In this document: in pieces, positions 53,470-61,779 of the stretch | How the letters are laid out: each line of letters opens with the position of its first letter | Numbering within the stretch: the stretch's first letter is position 1 | NCBI GenBank assembly: GCA_001643675.2 | Contig: LSRY02000036.1 | Span: forward strand, 930,001-994,000 | Direction: 5' to 3' | Length of the DNA stretch: 64,000 bases | DNA from: Monocercomonoides exilis PA203 | Taxonomy: Eukaryota > Protista > Preaxostyla | Made by a program: the position numbers and the translations under genes | The notes under the pieces: model-generated | What the model was told of the DNA's origin: nothing | What the model saw: the letters and a program-made list of their open reading frames with translations, nothing else | The model's database searches: none

Positions 53470-56400
53470 ATGGGCAAACAAATAACCACAGACTCTTCTA
53501 AACTTAAAAGTGCCTCAATTGTTCAAGAAAAAAATGTTGATGATGACTTGCATCTTCAAAATTCCAGTGAAATTCAAAGCGTTTGTGAAATTTGACATTA
53601 TTGAAAATATTTTAAAACCATCACAATTTATAAACAATATATCGTCGCTTATGGAACATATTTTAACAGGAAAATGCAGCGCCACAGATAAATGAAAAAA
53701 GTGCCACAAAGAAAGTCGTTCTTTTAGGATTGTCATTTTGTTGCATCTTTATTGCGACACAGACATCTTTGAACTATATGACCACTTTCTTTGCTGATTA
53801 TGCATCAATTGTTCTGTGCCTTTATGGTGTTGTGAATGCGATTTATGGATTGCTCTGTCCTGTGGTCAAGCATTATATTGGAATTATTGGCTCATTTAGA
53901 GTAGCTGCAATAGCTGGTCTTATTTTTGTTGCTATGTGTTTATTTTGCCTGATTGTCGTTTTCACACAACAGTCCCTTCCGACGTTTGGAATCGTTCTTC
54001 TATTTATTGGAGCAGTATTTTATGGAATGAGTTATGCAACACTGTGGTTTTGTTGGTCAGCATATATGGATGAAATAACGACTATTGATACTAGAGGAAA
54101 ACTTTCTGGATTGTTTTATGCAATATTTTATGCAAATTCACCACTTGGAAACTTTTTGGGATCTATTTTATTTTCTGTTGGATTTGAAAAGTATCAGATG
54201 CTTATTGTTCTGACTGCATTTTGTGTGATCGGAGTTGTTCTTATGTTTTTTGTGAGAACAAACAGCAAGAAAGACGAAAAGCACGAGCCACAAAAATCTT
54301 CATCCACAAAGAATGAAGCGAATGATAATGATCCAGAGAAAGGAAGAGGCACAGGCGGTTCATCTAACATCAGAGATGCAACTGAATCTCCAGCTCCAAA
54401 GCAAAACGATGCCTTTGTACGAAAAGATTCGATGAAAATGTCAACAACGTCTTTAAAACTGAAAGGCAAGCATTATGTTTCATTGAGTGACTTCGATGGA
54501 ACTGTTCCTGTTCCTGCTCATTCACATCTCGCATCTTCATCCACTGCCTCAAACTCTGGCTTTTCATCTTCACCTTCTTCAGCTGCTTCAATTCACAATA
54601 TGTCAACTGTATCTTCATCACCACATGTTTCTTCCTCATCTTCATCGACATCTCCCTCATCTCCATCTGCTGCTGCCACATCATCTCTCAGACCACCTCG
54701 TCCAACAACACTTTCTTCTTCTTCGTTAGCACCTCATTCGCCTTCCGTAACTCCTCAGCCATCAACACCATCTCTGGCGCTTAATCCACTAGTCAACCAG
54801 AAGTCTCACTCGACACTTCCTGATGCTCTGATTGATGAAGATCGAGAGGGCGATGCAGATGCTGATGGAGAAGGAGAAGGAGACCAGCTGGTTGTGGCTG
54901 TGGTGGGAAAGAGCAGAAGCAAGAAGAGAGCATCAAATGCAGCAGCAGTTGTGGGGAGGAAAGACAGTTTGGCTGACACTTCAAAGGAAAGTGCAATTAG
55001 AGCTGAAGACGAAGACGACGATGACGAGGATGAAGATGAAGGAAACGATGCACAGATAGTTGATGCAGACACACAGAAGAAAGAAGAACAGGTGATCAAA
55101 CAAGAACCTGAAGCAGAAGACGAAGACGATGAAGATGACGACGACTTTGAGGATGATAGAGACAGAACAGATGAAAATGGAATGGTTGATGAAATTGTGG
55201 CAGATGATGATGAGGAGCTTTCAGAAGAAGACGACGATGATCAGAACAATCAGACCCTCCGCCTTCCTTCTTCATATTCAACATCATCGCTGAGCAGACC
55301 CAAACTCGGCCCAGTATCTCCTGACCCAGCTGAGTCACCGGCACCCGAATTCTCACCGAAGGAGTATTTCCGCGACTTGTGGGAGATTATCCTCACACCT
55401 GGCTCATACCCAGTCTGCCTGGCATATTCGCTGTATCATCTTATCGGATGCTATCTTGTGTCTGTGATGACAAAACATCTGACACCTGAGCAGCAGGGGC
55501 TGTTTGTGGGAATTGGCTTTGGACTGAGTGGGATCTTTCTGATGATCGGCTCAATCGCATTTGGCCACATCGTAGACAAGTTCAGCAAGCGGACATCGCT
55601 CTTCATAAACTTTGTGGTTGTGATCCTCACAATCATATCAGCATGGGTCTTTCACATTGTCAGTCCTTCTCTTCCTGGCTTCAAAGTGTTCATGTTCTGT
55701 TTGACACTTTGCTTGTATGGCTTTGAAAACAGCGGATTGGATGTGAACTTCTTCTGGCTGAGCATCGAGACAAACAAGATGAACCCAATGGCCTATTTCC
55801 AGTACTGCCGCGTCTTTTCAAACGGAACTTATGGAATTGTTGGTCTGATTTCACAATGGCTGTGGAACGAACCATTCTTCTTCCTCATTCTGAACATGTT
55901 TTTGACCTTTGTTGTTATGCTGCTGATGTGGAACACCGATGTTACTGTGTTCTCATTCTCGAAGATGACAAAGGAGGCGCTGATCAAAGAAATAATACGT
56001 GATCCAACTCAGCTGCAGCTTACAGAAAGAGACGTAGAAACGATTCCAATTGTGGCATCAGTTGCATCAGTGCACCATCTGCAGGCAATGGAGCGCCTCA
56101 GCTCTCTTCAGCACATTACATCAATGAAACGTATCGAAAGAGAGTTGAGTCATCAAATGCTACCAAAAGAAGGAGGCACTTTGAGCAGGTCGAACACACG
56201 AGGATCAATGCAACGATTGGGAAGTGGCATGATGGGAACGAATGGGACGATGTCTTCTGCATCGATGCTGGCAATGCGAGGAAGCCAGTCGCAACTCGGA
56301 GGATTAGGACCGTATTACAATCCATCCTATTTGTCACTCGCCAGACAAGGAGCACTCAGCTCGTCCACTCTGAGCATGACATCACTGCACCAGCAACAGC

Positions 56401-58937
56401 CACATCCACAGCAGCCTCGTGTGAGAGGAAGATATGCTGACCAGCGGGGTGCTCTATCTTCTGTGACGTCGCTCTCAACTCTGAGCAACGATGGAACAGG
56501 AGGAGGAAGAAGCGGGATAGCTCCTGGGCGTGTCTATGCAGATGCCTTCAGCAATGGCACAGGAGGCGCAGTTACTCGGCAGCGACGCTCGGAAATGGGG
56601 CAGCGTGGGTCGTCTGGTGAGATTGATGCGCGCGCAATGACCTCATCCTCACTCTCATCCTCCTTCAACATCCAGTCGCCTGCGTCAGAAACGACAGATT
56701 CGTCTATTTCTTCATCTGCTCCACTGAATTCAAGAAAAAGGCTTCAGAAGAAAAAATCAGGTGGAAACTCTCCAGCTTCGCCTGGCTTTACCTCATCTGC
56801 TTTTTCTTCTGGTTCTCTCCAAACTGCTGAGAGCCCCCGAACATCTGGTCAAATGGACAATCGCTCAGAAAAGGCAAAACTGCAACAGATTTCAAGCAAA
56901 GGAAGGCTGAAGCCAAAGGCAGGACTACTTGGCCCTTCTTATGCTGCTTCATCCAACACTGCTGCTTTTCCAGTGGCAGCAACTGGCACATATTTGAGTT
57001 CGACTATTCCAACATCTGCATCATATTTGGGTTCATCCTTTGCACTTGGCTCGAGATATGGCTCTTCTGCTCTGCTGATGACAACTGGTGGTGGAGCAGG
57101 CAATGTGCCTGTGCCTGTGCCTGTTCCAATTCCAGTTGGAGGTAGAAGAGACGAAGGTGCATATGCACCGTCTGTAACATCAACTTCTCCAATTCATCCA
57201 ACTGGAATGTCTCTTGCAATGTCCTCTTCATTCTCGTCTATTCCGGTGGCTGGCCATGCCATTCCACCAACACTCGAAGTAATGGATGGATGTACTGTTG
57301 ATGGAACACAGCAACCGATGCTTGTTGAACCAGCAATGTCAAACACAGAAAAGGAAAAGAAGACAAAGAAAGGCAAAAAAGGGAAAGATGGACTTAACAG
57401 ACAAGGGAGCCAAGCATTTCCATCAGGTTCTCCTTCAGCCAGCACAGCACAATTACACACATCAGCCTCAAAGAACAGCAGAATGTTTCAACAGCAGTCA
57501 TCTATTCCTTCGTCATCATCAAATCTATCTCGTTCACTCTCTCAGTACAAGTCAGCCTTTCCTGTGATGTTCCCACCATCCATCTCTGCGTCCAACTTGA
57601 TGTCTTCACTCGCTCAGTCACATCCTGTTCTCCACCGCAAAACAGAAGAAACACTTCCTCCACCGCTTTCAAGGCCAGCTATCACAACAGAGCTGATCAG
57701 AAAGGCAGAAAGCGAAGCAGAACTCGGAAGAGACGAATATACATACGAAGACGAAAGGGAAAGCGATGATGAGAATGGAGAAGTGTGGAAAGAGCGCATC
57801 AACGAAGATGGCAGCAGAATCGAAGAGCAGAGCCCACAAACAGGACAAGATTTGGGCGATGAGAATCGTCCTCTTCGTCAAGGCGACCAAAAGCCAAAAG
57901 CGAATCCCAAACAAAAGCGCATTGCTGGCTCGAAAAGTCGGTCTCTGCTTCAGCCAAAAGGAGGCATTCGAGGAGAGATGGGGCTGTTTGTGTCGTCTCA
58001 GAGCATCGGACTTGGGATGAATGAGCGGGTGAAGGAATACCAGAGAGAAAAGAGGAGAGAAATGGAAAGGAAAGAAGAGGTGAGCGCTGAAAATCAGTTG
58101 GTGCAGCAGGCGATGGATGGAATTGGAATGTCTGAATATGACTCAGGTGCTGTTGTGATTGGCGATGCAGTGACTGACAATCAACAGGCAGGAATAGGAT
58201 TGGATGTGGTGAACGAGGAAGATGAAAGAGAGGCATATGAAGAAGGCGAGGCAGGTTTGAATATTCCTCAAGCAGAGGTTGGCGGAAGAGAAGAAGAAGA
58301 AGATGACGACGACGATGATGATGAGTCGCTTGCTGCAGACGATGGAAAAGAGGCGATTGAATTGAACGAGCACAACATCACCTTCTTCCCTCCAACTGTT
58401 TCGTTCCCAGCATTTGTACCAGTTCAATCATCACAGCAACCGTCTTCACTTTCTGCTTCCAGCTCTTCTCCTTCTTCTGGTGCACTTTCATCAGAAACCA
58501 CGGGCGCTAATATTCCTTCAACGGGATCAGCTATTTCAACATCTGGTTTGTCTGACAGCGTATCTTCACAGTCATCAATCTATCCACAAGCAACAATTGA
58601 GCCATCAGCAGATTCAATGATTGCATCCCCCTCTTCCTCTGCTCTTCCTTCAACAGCCGCATCTGATCCATTTTCTGATCTGCATCCGATGCTCACTGCA
58701 CAGCTGGTCAGTGTTGCGCTGTCTGCGTCTGCTGAAACAGGCGCTGTCCGTCCGTCTTTTGGAGCACCTGTGCAGAGTTCACCGCTTGTGTCTATTCCTC
58801 AGCCAGTGGAACAGCCAGAGACATTTCCAACAAGAGCATCTCAGGCACAGTTGCAGATGGAACACACAAACAATGAGGAATCTGCTAATTCTGCGACTTC
58901 GGATGAGCATGCTTTTGATGGAAAAGAGGAAAAGTAA
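53470..58937 (+). CDS. UNC-93-like MFS transporter/channel regulator with greatly expanded central loop and C-tail
   Basis: Two six-TM halves (LSFCCIFIATQT...GMSYATLWFCWSAYMDEITTIDTRGKLSGLFYAI; GSIAFGHIVDKFSKR, similar to MFS motif A). Exon 1 from ATG 53470 splices GTTTGT..AACAG. Confidence 0.82.
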
Positions 58938-60115: not shown

Positions 60116-61779
60116 TCAGCTTTCTGAGCCTTTTGCTTCAGTTTCTTTAATGTTCTGCTCTCCTTCATCATCTTTTTTGTTATTATCAGCATTTTGCGTT
60201 ATTTTGCTATTGTCAATGCCCTCAATTTTTCCCCCTTCTTCTTTTGAACGAGCCTTCTTTGCTTCTTCTGCTTTCCTCGCTTTCATTTCCATCATCAGCT
60301 CCAATCTGCTTTTCCCTCTCTTCTTTGTCTCAGCATGATCTGCATCCTCATTCTTCTCTTCATTCCTAATAAGTGTTATGCCAGAAACACCTGTGCGCGT
60401 TGGACTCTGCAAAAAAGGCTGTGGAGAAGTTGAACTTAGTAATGGCGATGTAGGAGATGATGGTGATGTTCCACAAAATCCAATTCTTGCTTCACTTTTC
60501 AATCGTTCAATTCCCATCATTTCTTTGCTCTTCCCATCTAAACTAGTTTCTTTATGCATCCCGAATCTGTTTTCCTCTTCGTCGTTGTTGCTCCGATAAT
60601 CTGTTTCATCTTTCTTTTCGTTTTGCATCACTGAAGCTCCACCAACACCAATTCCGCTTGATCTCATCAGCCTTCCCAGCTCTTCAAAGTCTCCAAATAA
60701 GACGCTCTTGTTGTCAGGCTGCCGCAACACAGCTGCTGGATGCAGCGTCGGAAACACCCGCACACGCTTCGCAGCTCCAGGAAGTGCAATCATCCTTACC
60801 TTTCCATGTTCAGAAAGAATCCCTCCAATTTTTTCTCCTGTGGTGCTTTTGTTGACGCCACACTGAAATCCCGCAAGAACAAACTTTGCTGCGAAATTTC
60901 CTAATGCCACCACCCACTCTGGACAGATGATTTGCAGCTGCTCCAAAAGATAAGGTGTGTGCTCTTTCATCTCATCTGCCCGTGGATTTCGCATTCCAGG
61001 TGCGGCATACTTAAGGATGTTACATATATACACATCTCCAATACTCAAACCAGCTACTCCAAGCAATTGCCCCAAAAGTCGTCCAGATGCACCCACAAAT
61101 GGAACACCTTGTCTGTCTTCTTCGGGGCCTGGCCCTTCTCCAATTAGAACGATCTTAGCACACGGGTTTCCACTACCAAACACAAGTCGTTGAGCTGTAT
61201 CTCGAAGTGCTCTAATCGATGATATTTGCATTAATGGCGAGTTGAAAAGTAGCAAAACGAAAGAAATGAATGAAAATCAGAACAAACGAAACAAAGCAGT
61301 TCCAAGAAACAACAATATAATTAAATAGTTTATTTTTAGAAAAAAACAAAGATGAAAAATCGTTTGAAAAATAAACAAGTTGATTTAAAGGTTGTTCATT
61401 CAAAAAATTGTTTGATTTTATGAAATGGTTATATTTAAGAAGAAGAAGAAGAAGAAAAAAAAAAAAAAAATAAGCTTTTAAACGAAAGAACAAAAAATTT
61501 AACAAACAATGTTTTGTTTCCTTCAATTCTCTTTCTGAGTTCCTCCAATCTATACACTTTTTCTTCACGGCTCAGGGTTATACTTCCTTTTGTACTTCCT
61601 GAACAAGCTTTAAAAAAGCTCGAAATATCTCGCATGACTCCGCCATCAGGTTTTTTGGCAATTCCATCATTTCTTTGCTCTATGTGTGTTTTTTCCTCAC
61701 CATTTTCTTTATTCACTTGATAACTCTTTTCATCTCTAATTGGGTATTCGTCACTTTTCAGTTTGTATTCTGCATGCAT
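60116..61779 (-). CDS. Family-4 (prokaryotic-type) uracil-DNA glycosylase, 2 exons
   Basis: LVFGSGNPCAKIVLIGEGPGPEEDRQGVPFVGASG, VYICNILKY, VVALGNFA and FPTLHPAAVLR. Intron 61507-61212 (GTTTGT..ATTAG) joins KT-L-ALRDTA in frame. Start codon is tentative. Confidence 0.93.

Follow-up and report, generated by a model that had tools for sequence, protein, structure and literature searches.

We examined a gene in a 64,000-nucleotide stretch of the genome of Monocercomonoides exilis PA203 (contig LSRY02000036.1, positions 930,001 to 994,000; hereafter the window). The gene, at window positions 60116-61779 on the reverse strand, as are all feature coordinates given for it below, encodes a predicted uracil-DNA glycosylase (UDG) of family 4 that lacks all four cysteines of the usual [4Fe-4S] cluster, and probably reached eukaryotes from a DPANN-like archaeon. 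It has two exons, which we searched, scanned and aligned separately. Exon 1 (61508-61779) opens with an ATG and runs for 90 codons plus 2 nt, covering an N-terminal extension of ~70 residues and the first helix of the UDG fold; its last two bases are the TT of a Leu codon. A predicted spliceosomal intron of 296 nt (61212-61507; GT..AG, reading GTTTGT...TTAG; AT-rich, with a GC content of 0.23) interrupts this codon in phase 2 (TT/A), at the position of the second cluster ligand. Exon 2 (60116-61211) holds the catalytic UDG domain (60641-61211, residues 1-190 of the exon-2 frame) and then a low-complexity C-terminal tail of ~175 residues, Ser/Pro-rich and then Lys/Glu-rich, which together with the TGA stop codon (60118-60116) occupies 60116-60640. 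There was no Pfam or NCBIfam match past the domain, and the tail showed no conservation in the related Blattamonas. Over both exons the open frame spans 455 codons with every catalytic motif intact.

Three indirect lines of sequence evidence support the predicted splice. Against a profile of 118 prokaryotic relatives from the nearest clade, which we call YH for its Tyr and His at the third and fourth ligand positions, homology to the exon-2 frame opens at profile position 21, exactly on the residue that follows the AG acceptor, and does not extend to the in-frame residues before that acceptor. Read in the register dictated by the splice, the final 19 residues of exon 1 form the N-terminal helix of the family-4 fold (EEKVYRLEELRKRIEGNKT, 61510-61566), with Asn at the first cluster-ligand position; aligned ungapped to profile positions 1-19 they score 14.7 bits, ranking 7 of the 62,080 19-mers in a six-frame translation of the window. 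An intron also lies at the identical position and phase, in a Leu codon before [A/P]-[L/C]-R-[D/E], in a second family-4 gene of the same genome (C38:700421-700903, forward strand) and in the orthologue from Blattamonas nauphoetae. Exon 1 alone was not detected by a local hidden Markov model search (E 11); of the comparisons made with it, the ungapped score in fixed register was the sole informative one. The public protein model at the locus (P0121, 371 aa) lacks exon 1 and begins at an intronic Met (MQISSIR..., window 61212-61255); it is probably a truncated annotation.

Exon 2 by itself scored above the cut-offs of the family-4 model TIGR00758 (UDG_fam4; 138.7 bits, cut-off 125.3) and of the Pfam UDG family PF03167 (7e-29; 101.2 bits, cut-off 24.3), and below those of the archaeal equivalog model and the UdgX model. 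Among proteins of solved structure, its best matches are family-4 UDGs: 1ui0 (Thermus, 1.8e-29), 4zbx (Sulfolobus tokodaii) and 1l9g (Thermotoga). Motif A, GEGPG with its water-activating Glu (61127-61141), and motif B, HPAA (60731-60742), both align to 1ui0 and 4zbx, and the uracil-pocket Phe of PFVG (exon-2 residues 37-40) and the Asn of YICN (N64) are invariant in an alignment of oxymonad and archaeal proteins. We modelled the complete domain on the Blattamonas orthologue alone; the predicted fold (pLDDT 93.5) superposes on solved family-4 enzymes with template-modelling (TM) scores of 0.88-0.90 to 4zbx and 1ui0 and root-mean-square deviations of 1.6-2.3 Å. An earlier reading made from the letters of the window alone (hereafter the sequence-only reading) had named the protein a family-4 UDG with intact GEGPG and HPAA motifs, an intron of 296 nt and extensions at both ends, and on each of these points our results agree with it. 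A UdgX-like function was considered and rejected, as motif A reads GEGPG and not GEQPG and the UdgX model TIGR03914 gave 80.8 bits against a cut-off of 189.95.

The protein departs from characterized relatives at the cluster. Aligned to 1ui0, Y68 and H84 stand opposite the third and fourth ligand cysteines: Tyr takes the place of Cys in LKYAAP (60998-61015; canonical KC-RPP, with RPP changed to AAP), and His does so in EHTPYL (60947-60964), both replacements being also evident from signature counts across the clade. When canonical sequences are used to count back from the conserved VFG, the two positions of the CxxC motif coincide with the Asn of exon 1 and with the Leu codon that the intron interrupts. 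The four ligand positions therefore read N, L, Y and H, and all four ligands are lost, as the sequence-only reading had stated, including the changes of KC to KY and of the fourth Cys to His. Because none of the four cysteines is present, we assign the protein to a cluster-free subtype within the family-4 sequences and not to the canonical Fe-S UDGa enzymes. The RPPxNR loop that contacts DNA is also changed, to AAPGMRNP in the window protein and to LNGKKKT in the C38 paralogue.

Loss of ligands is widespread in the family. Among 263 aligned sequences, the ligand columns read CCCC in 90, x-C-Y-H in ~110, CCSC in 28 and x-C-Y-F in 20, with a few prokaryotic sequences reading x-L-Y-H; 37 of 79 species-representative loci were other than CCCC, in a sample biased to relatives of the query. 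Several variants in the species-representative loci are specific to lineages: FCWC to Alphaproteobacteria, ALHS to Balneolota, LSDY to Anaerolineae, and HTYF to one genome of Saccharibacteria. As judged from these columns, cluster loss is frequent in prokaryotes and of several origins. By the same alignment, the window protein owes its Y/H state to inheritance: the prokaryotic clade had lost three of the four cysteines before any transfer. That clade already reads x-C-Y-H, and in some members x-L-Y-H, so the loss was largely received by the eukaryote and did not evolve there. In agreement with frequent loss, Cys-to-Ser mutants of archaeal family-4 UDGs keep ~60% of their activity and lose ~40%, a mild effect for which the cluster is regarded as structural (PMC5295032).

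The nearest prokaryotic relatives of the window protein are archaeal. Word-based searches found, after the Blattamonas protein, P0001 and P0002 (213-215 residues, 46-49% identity), which share KY and NHTPYL with it and lie on contigs with the archaeal gene order L7Ae, NusA-KH, S12, S7, and also with TFIIE-alpha, SepF and ZPR1. A profile search returned more than 100 close relatives, for which every source name was Woesearchaeota, Nanoarchaeota or Nanobdellota except for one metagenome-assembled genome (MAG) named Alphaproteobacteria, and the nearest cluster in the ESM Atlas occurs most often in Nanobdellota. The best match among GTDB species representatives is a 1.2 Mb MAG titled “uncultured Methanosarcinales archaeon”; a homologue is present in 28 of the 41 genomes related to it (0.6-2.1 Mb), ~21 of them at 57-76% identity. 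The Methanosarcinales label looks doubtful for a MAG of 1.2 Mb, and the lineage looks to behave like DPANN. On the strength of these source names, gene neighbourhoods, Atlas cluster and small genomes, the YH subtype is native to a small-genome, DPANN-like archaeal lineage and not to bacteria of the candidate phyla radiation (CPR). The sequence-only reading had placed Cys-less KY variants in CPR and proposed a probable bacterial transfer. Cys-poor KY variants do occur in prokaryotes, among them a Saccharibacteria (CPR) sequence with H-T-Y-F, of a related type that we call YF, and the ultimate ancestry of the gene is prokaryotic as proposed, but the window protein belongs to the YH clade and its closest prokaryotic relatives are archaeal, not bacterial.

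Homologues occur in other eukaryotes. The M. exilis genome contains exactly two PF03167 loci, the window gene and the paralogue on C38, and besides these two we detected no TDG-, MUG- or SMUG-type member of PF03167 in it. The paralogue corresponds to the public model P0263 (856 aa, MONOS_5281; L008:4391-6811), which reads KC instead of KY and has a low-complexity tail of ~600 residues. The Blattamonas orthologue is 49% identical to the window protein and is named “putative Type-4 uracil-DNA glycosylase.” In an exhaustive profile search (34,841 matches at E <= 0.001), the three oxymonad proteins were directly followed by a eukaryote-like metagenome protein of 303 residues (P0264) and then by a transcript of the amoebozoan Ceratiomyxa fruticulosa (P0265), with a protein of Paratrimastix pyriformis (P0276) slightly lower. 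All three are of the Y/H type, and that of Paratrimastix retains the one remaining Cys. The Paratrimastix gene (JAPMOS010000079.1, L097:3001-5017) has five annotated introns and lies between genes for a WD40 protein and a CCT chaperonin. Residues 176-218 of P0276 are unrelated sequence in place of the conserved IIxPxxIVxLGNxAxKFVL, and the junction annotated at that point does not have GT..AG borders; this model is probably mis-spliced. In P0265, residues 1-280 form an N-terminal region fused to the UDG domain.

The window gene is integrated in its host genome, as the sequence-only reading had held. It lies ~990 kb into its contig, in an assembly of 82 Mb and 101 contigs. GC content overall and at third codon positions (GC3) is 0.486 and 0.379 in the UDG domain and 0.462 and 0.383 in the neighbouring open reading frame (ORF) with an MFS domain (53730-58937); because these values are equal, we consider the gene fully adapted to host composition. 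Eukaryotic neighbours had also been offered as proof of integration, and this part of the argument carries less, as the MFS-domain ORF is the one neighbour checked by family and MFS transporters are not specific to eukaryotes; the main support comes from the intron together with the paralogue and the orthologues. Contamination is excluded by these features, the orthologues lying in eukaryotic contigs, and by the host-like GC3.

We placed the gene by phylogeny with several samplings. In a tree under LG+C20 with oxymonads as the sole eukaryotes, the oxymonads formed a clade (support 100/99) inside the YH clade (99/97), the bacterial YF clade was sister to YH, and YH plus YF split from the canonical enzymes at 98/89. 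The sequence-only reading had proposed to look for nesting in a CPR or other Cys-less clade; the YH clade is Cys-poor, and the relatives in it are of archaeal type instead of CPR. With six eukaryotes included, a tree constrained to join them in one clade exceeded the free tree by 8.7 log-likelihood units in an approximately unbiased (AU) test (p-AU 0.71), so their monophyly is not rejected. Our cleanest tree left out five long-branch prokaryotic rows, the short fragment P0347 and the fast-evolving C38 paralogue. In it all eukaryotes formed one clade (93/91), comprising Preaxostyla (93/57), with the oxymonads at 100/93, and a pair of Ceratiomyxa and P0264 (98/91), and branching inside the clade follows organismal relationships. 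On these trees the eukaryotic copies fall within or beside the archaeal YH clade, and the sequences nearest to them are P0243, P0262, P0212 and P0234. We infer one old acquisition from a DPANN-like archaeon, at or before the Preaxostyla ancestor; later spread between eukaryotes, or a second transfer, may have followed. A recent acquisition by M. exilis is contradicted by the intron shared with Blattamonas, by the homologues in Paratrimastix, Ceratiomyxa and P0264 and by the single eukaryotic clade. A widespread, vertically inherited eukaryotic clade had been named as one finding that would tell against the sequence-only reading; what we found comes near to it, in that a eukaryotic clade exists, but this clade is patchy and not widespread.

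The terminal extensions of the eukaryotic proteins contain motifs resembling the PCNA-interacting protein (PIP) box. In exon 1 the motif is MRDISSFF (residues 49-56, 61612-61635), PIP-like without the leading Gln, which aligns with SADIGSFF at the same relative place in Blattamonas. The full consensus Q-x-x-[LIM]-x-x-[FY]-[FY] occurs at the C-termini of Ceratiomyxa (QRALTDFF) and P0264 (QKTLETFF), and the N-terminus of Paratrimastix carries a full PIP consensus as QTTLFSFM. The pattern [LIMV].SF[FM], a search pattern that we defined after seeing the data, arises in 0.2-0.3% of shuffles of each extension. The archaeal relatives have a counterpart: a C-terminal end of the archaeal style QxxLxxF[LMI] occurs in 12 of 125 prokaryotic YH-clade proteins (P0001, P0002, P0146, P0150-P0154, P0161, P0217, P0259 and P0261) against 1 of 201 canonical ones, and in none of the YF or CCSC sequences. 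Human UNG2 carries its PIP box, QKTLYSFF, at the N-terminus. Archaeal family-4 UDGs bind PCNA, according to a reference cited in PMC5295032. Because of the motifs in eukaryotic copies and at archaeal YH C-termini, this archaeal binding and the parallel with UNG2, we propose clamp tethering: the pattern suggests that putative PIP boxes tether the eukaryotic family-4 UDGs to the replication clamp. PCNA_N matches in M. exilis at C15:1455138-1455622 and C39:367995-368472, both split by several introns, suggest that the genome encodes two PCNA paralogues. A 277-residue metagenome protein of a “K-I ... H” type (P0285, L098:621-1454), from a tightly packed contig, has a canonical C-terminal PIP box, QSSITQFF, after a Ser/Thr-rich tail.

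Taking this evidence together, we consider it likely that the window gene is a nuclear, cluster-free family-4 UDG that passed from a DPANN-like archaeon into a eukaryote, with a proposed function in uracil excision and PCNA tethering. The gene would have entered the eukaryotes at or before the Preaxostyla ancestor, already without most or all of its cluster ligands; it may later have spread from eukaryote to eukaryote or been transferred a second time. Because the catalytic apparatus is complete and the Blattamonas model superposes on family-4 enzymes, ordinary monofunctional uracil excision in base-excision repair, with no metal cluster, is to be expected. Side chains in the cluster's stead would hold the loop that it normally anchors. 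The N-terminal MRDISSFF would tether the putative enzyme to PCNA at replication forks, by analogy with human UNG2, and a PCNA box already present in the archaeal protein may have eased its adoption by a eukaryote.

A number of observations weigh against parts of this account. The domain is short, offering ~190 informative columns, and the eukaryotes sit on long branches; when further eukaryotes and long-branch prokaryotes were added, the backbone was not resolved and the free tree contained three eukaryotic groups. The backbone within the YH clade is likewise not resolved, and the prokaryotic YH sequences formed one group in 14% of bootstrap trees, so that the eukaryotes may be nested among them or sister to them. 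Most members of the YH clade are metagenomic proteins with no taxon name, and the names that exist include the Alphaproteobacteria and Methanosarcinales labels. None of the five annotated Paratrimastix introns lies at the oxymonad position, and BLASTP could not align the exon-1 extension with the N-terminus of the Blattamonas protein. As to the clamp motifs, those of M. exilis and Blattamonas fit the hydrophobic and aromatic positions of the PIP box and are without its canonical Gln, and the extension of the C38 paralogue contains no clear PIP motif.

Two rival histories were weighed. The gene could have been inherited vertically, from the archaeal ancestor of eukaryotes or through the last eukaryotic common ancestor (LECA), and then lost massively; the single eukaryotic clade with its organismal internal order would fit such descent, as would the distance between metamonads and Amoebozoa, which are separate supergroups, and a placement of the eukaryotes as sister to the whole prokaryotic YH set is compatible with the trees. 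Yet only five eukaryotic lineages or sequences stand among the 150 best of 1.84 billion representatives, in our best trees the eukaryotes branch, weakly supported, from within the DPANN-type clade, and the 60-61% identity between Paratrimastix and a prokaryotic sequence is high for a split before LECA. The PIP box, moreover, is N-terminal in Preaxostyla and C-terminal in Ceratiomyxa and P0264, and we judge vertical inheritance unlikely. That difference between termini suits two or three separate archaeal transfers, into the oxymonad ancestor, Paratrimastix and the lineage of Ceratiomyxa, with the eukaryotic clade a long-branch artefact. The three groups in the free tree of all rows, eukaryote monophyly in 31% of bootstrap trees, the lack of an intron common to Paratrimastix and oxymonads, and the Cys kept by Paratrimastix, whose protein is closest to P0243, all point the same way. 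What tells against separate entries is that the tree constrained to one clade has the better likelihood and that removal of the long-branch rows gave one clade at 93/91; we think this history improbable.

The remaining alternatives concern a different donor and a different function. The sequence-only reading, taken as a recent event in which M. exilis received from CPR/Patescibacteria or other bacteria an enzyme kept for its independence of Fe-S clusters under a remodelled assembly pathway, draws on the Saccharibacteria sequence, on the position of the bacterial YF clade as sister to YH and on the host, an amitochondriate oxymonad. Ceratiomyxa is an ordinary aerobe. Because the cluster was already gone in the donor lineage, Ceratiomyxa carries the gene, and published inventories report 4Fe-4S proteins in normal number for oxymonads (PMC10703272), the link to Fe-S assembly is weak, and the missing cluster is no adaptation to mitochondrial loss. 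With the window protein in the archaeal-type YH clade and not in YF, and with the intron-sharing Blattamonas orthologue and the homologues in Paratrimastix and Ceratiomyxa, a recent CPR transfer is largely refuted, and we give it hardly any credence. That the gene is silent or decaying, or that its UDG-like domain now serves for something other than base removal, for instance for binding uracil-DNA as UdgX does, is brought to mind by the altered RPPxNR loops of both M. exilis copies and by the long, low-complexity tails; a frame of 455 open codons with all catalytic motifs intact, conservation of the gene in three genera, a conserved intron, and a motif A and model score unlike those of UdgX make it very unlikely.

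The sequence-only reading had also raised the possibility that UNG is missing from the genome, and it is not simply absent: contig C14 carries a divergent UNG-like gene of two exons at ~2546560-2547740 on the reverse strand (L007:1489-1959 and L007:779-1405). Its two matches to TIGR00628 are collinear, at 63.8 and 19.1 bits, under the cut-off of 185.75, and its motifs read GQDPYP for GQDPYH and HPAVEA (in APHPAVEAF) for HPSPLS. Genome papers mention base excision repair in general terms only (PMC6759080), and the supplements of PMC10703272 contain no mention of a family-4 UDG. A broader proposal, which we offer tentatively and hold to be more doubtful than probable, is that Preaxostyla, at least one amoebozoan and one further protist form a new eukaryotic clade of cluster-free, archaeal-type UDGs wired to PCNA through PIP boxes, arising by a rare DPANN transfer helped by a clamp-compatible PIP or surviving as a relic of archaeal ancestry, and that the oxymonad enzyme may replace a degenerating UNG in replication-coupled uracil removal.

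Reviews present family-4 UDGs as bacterial and archaeal Fe-S enzymes (PMC8307549), and within the library we could search we found no description of natural cluster-free members. Against that picture, cluster-free family-4 UDGs appear to be common, with many prokaryotic origins, and one lineage of them, characteristic of archaea with small genomes, has gained a limited yet genuine foothold among eukaryotes. Few of the genes transferred into anaerobic protists have archaeal donors. The PCNA-box motifs offer a hypothesis, open to testing, on how a repair enzyme of foreign origin could be coupled to the replication machinery of its host, and the public gene model at the locus appears to miss the first exon.

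The closest characterized systems are the family-4 UDGa enzymes of Thermus thermophilus (TTUDGA, 1ui0), Sulfolobus tokodaii (4zbx) and Thermotoga maritima (TM0511, 1l9g), with which the window protein shares the TIGR00758 family, motifs A and B, the Phe and the Asn, and, by the model of the Blattamonas orthologue, a predicted common fold (TM 0.86-0.90). It differs from them in carrying N, L, Y and H for the four cysteines, in the altered RPP loop after the third ligand, in a five-residue insertion after AGF, in its terminal extensions of eukaryotic type and in the spliceosomal intron of its gene. UdgX of Mycobacterium smegmatis (6ail) is a structural relative of family 4 (TM ~0.7), but it has GEQPG and keeps the cluster, and the window protein falls under the cut-off of its model. 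The archaeal YH proteins (P0001, P0002 and P0146; 46-52% identity) share the Tyr and His at ligands 3 and 4, NHTPYL and the FVLAGF..GM.K insertion, and some members carry a PCNA box; they differ in their length of ~200-215 residues, in mostly keeping one Cys (ligand 2), in having no N-terminal extension and in the placement of the PIP box, where present, at the extreme C-terminus.

In its proposed use the window protein resembles human UNG2 (family 1), which has a disordered N-terminal extension with ..L/I-x-S-F-F before the catalytic domain, an analogy that would extend to replication-coupled repair. UNG2 is a nuclear enzyme of replication-coupled uracil removal; its catalytic domain belongs to another UDG family. 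In its missing cluster the window protein resembles the clusterless MutY and MutYX enzymes, including that of Entamoeba histolytica, which likewise belong to a base-excision glycosylase family that normally holds a structural [4Fe-4S] cluster and which form natural cluster-free clades, the one in an anaerobic protist being attributed to lateral transfer (PMC11722440). They differ in having a helix-hairpin-helix fold and another substrate, and in that their relatives are bacterial, whereas those of the window gene are archaeal.

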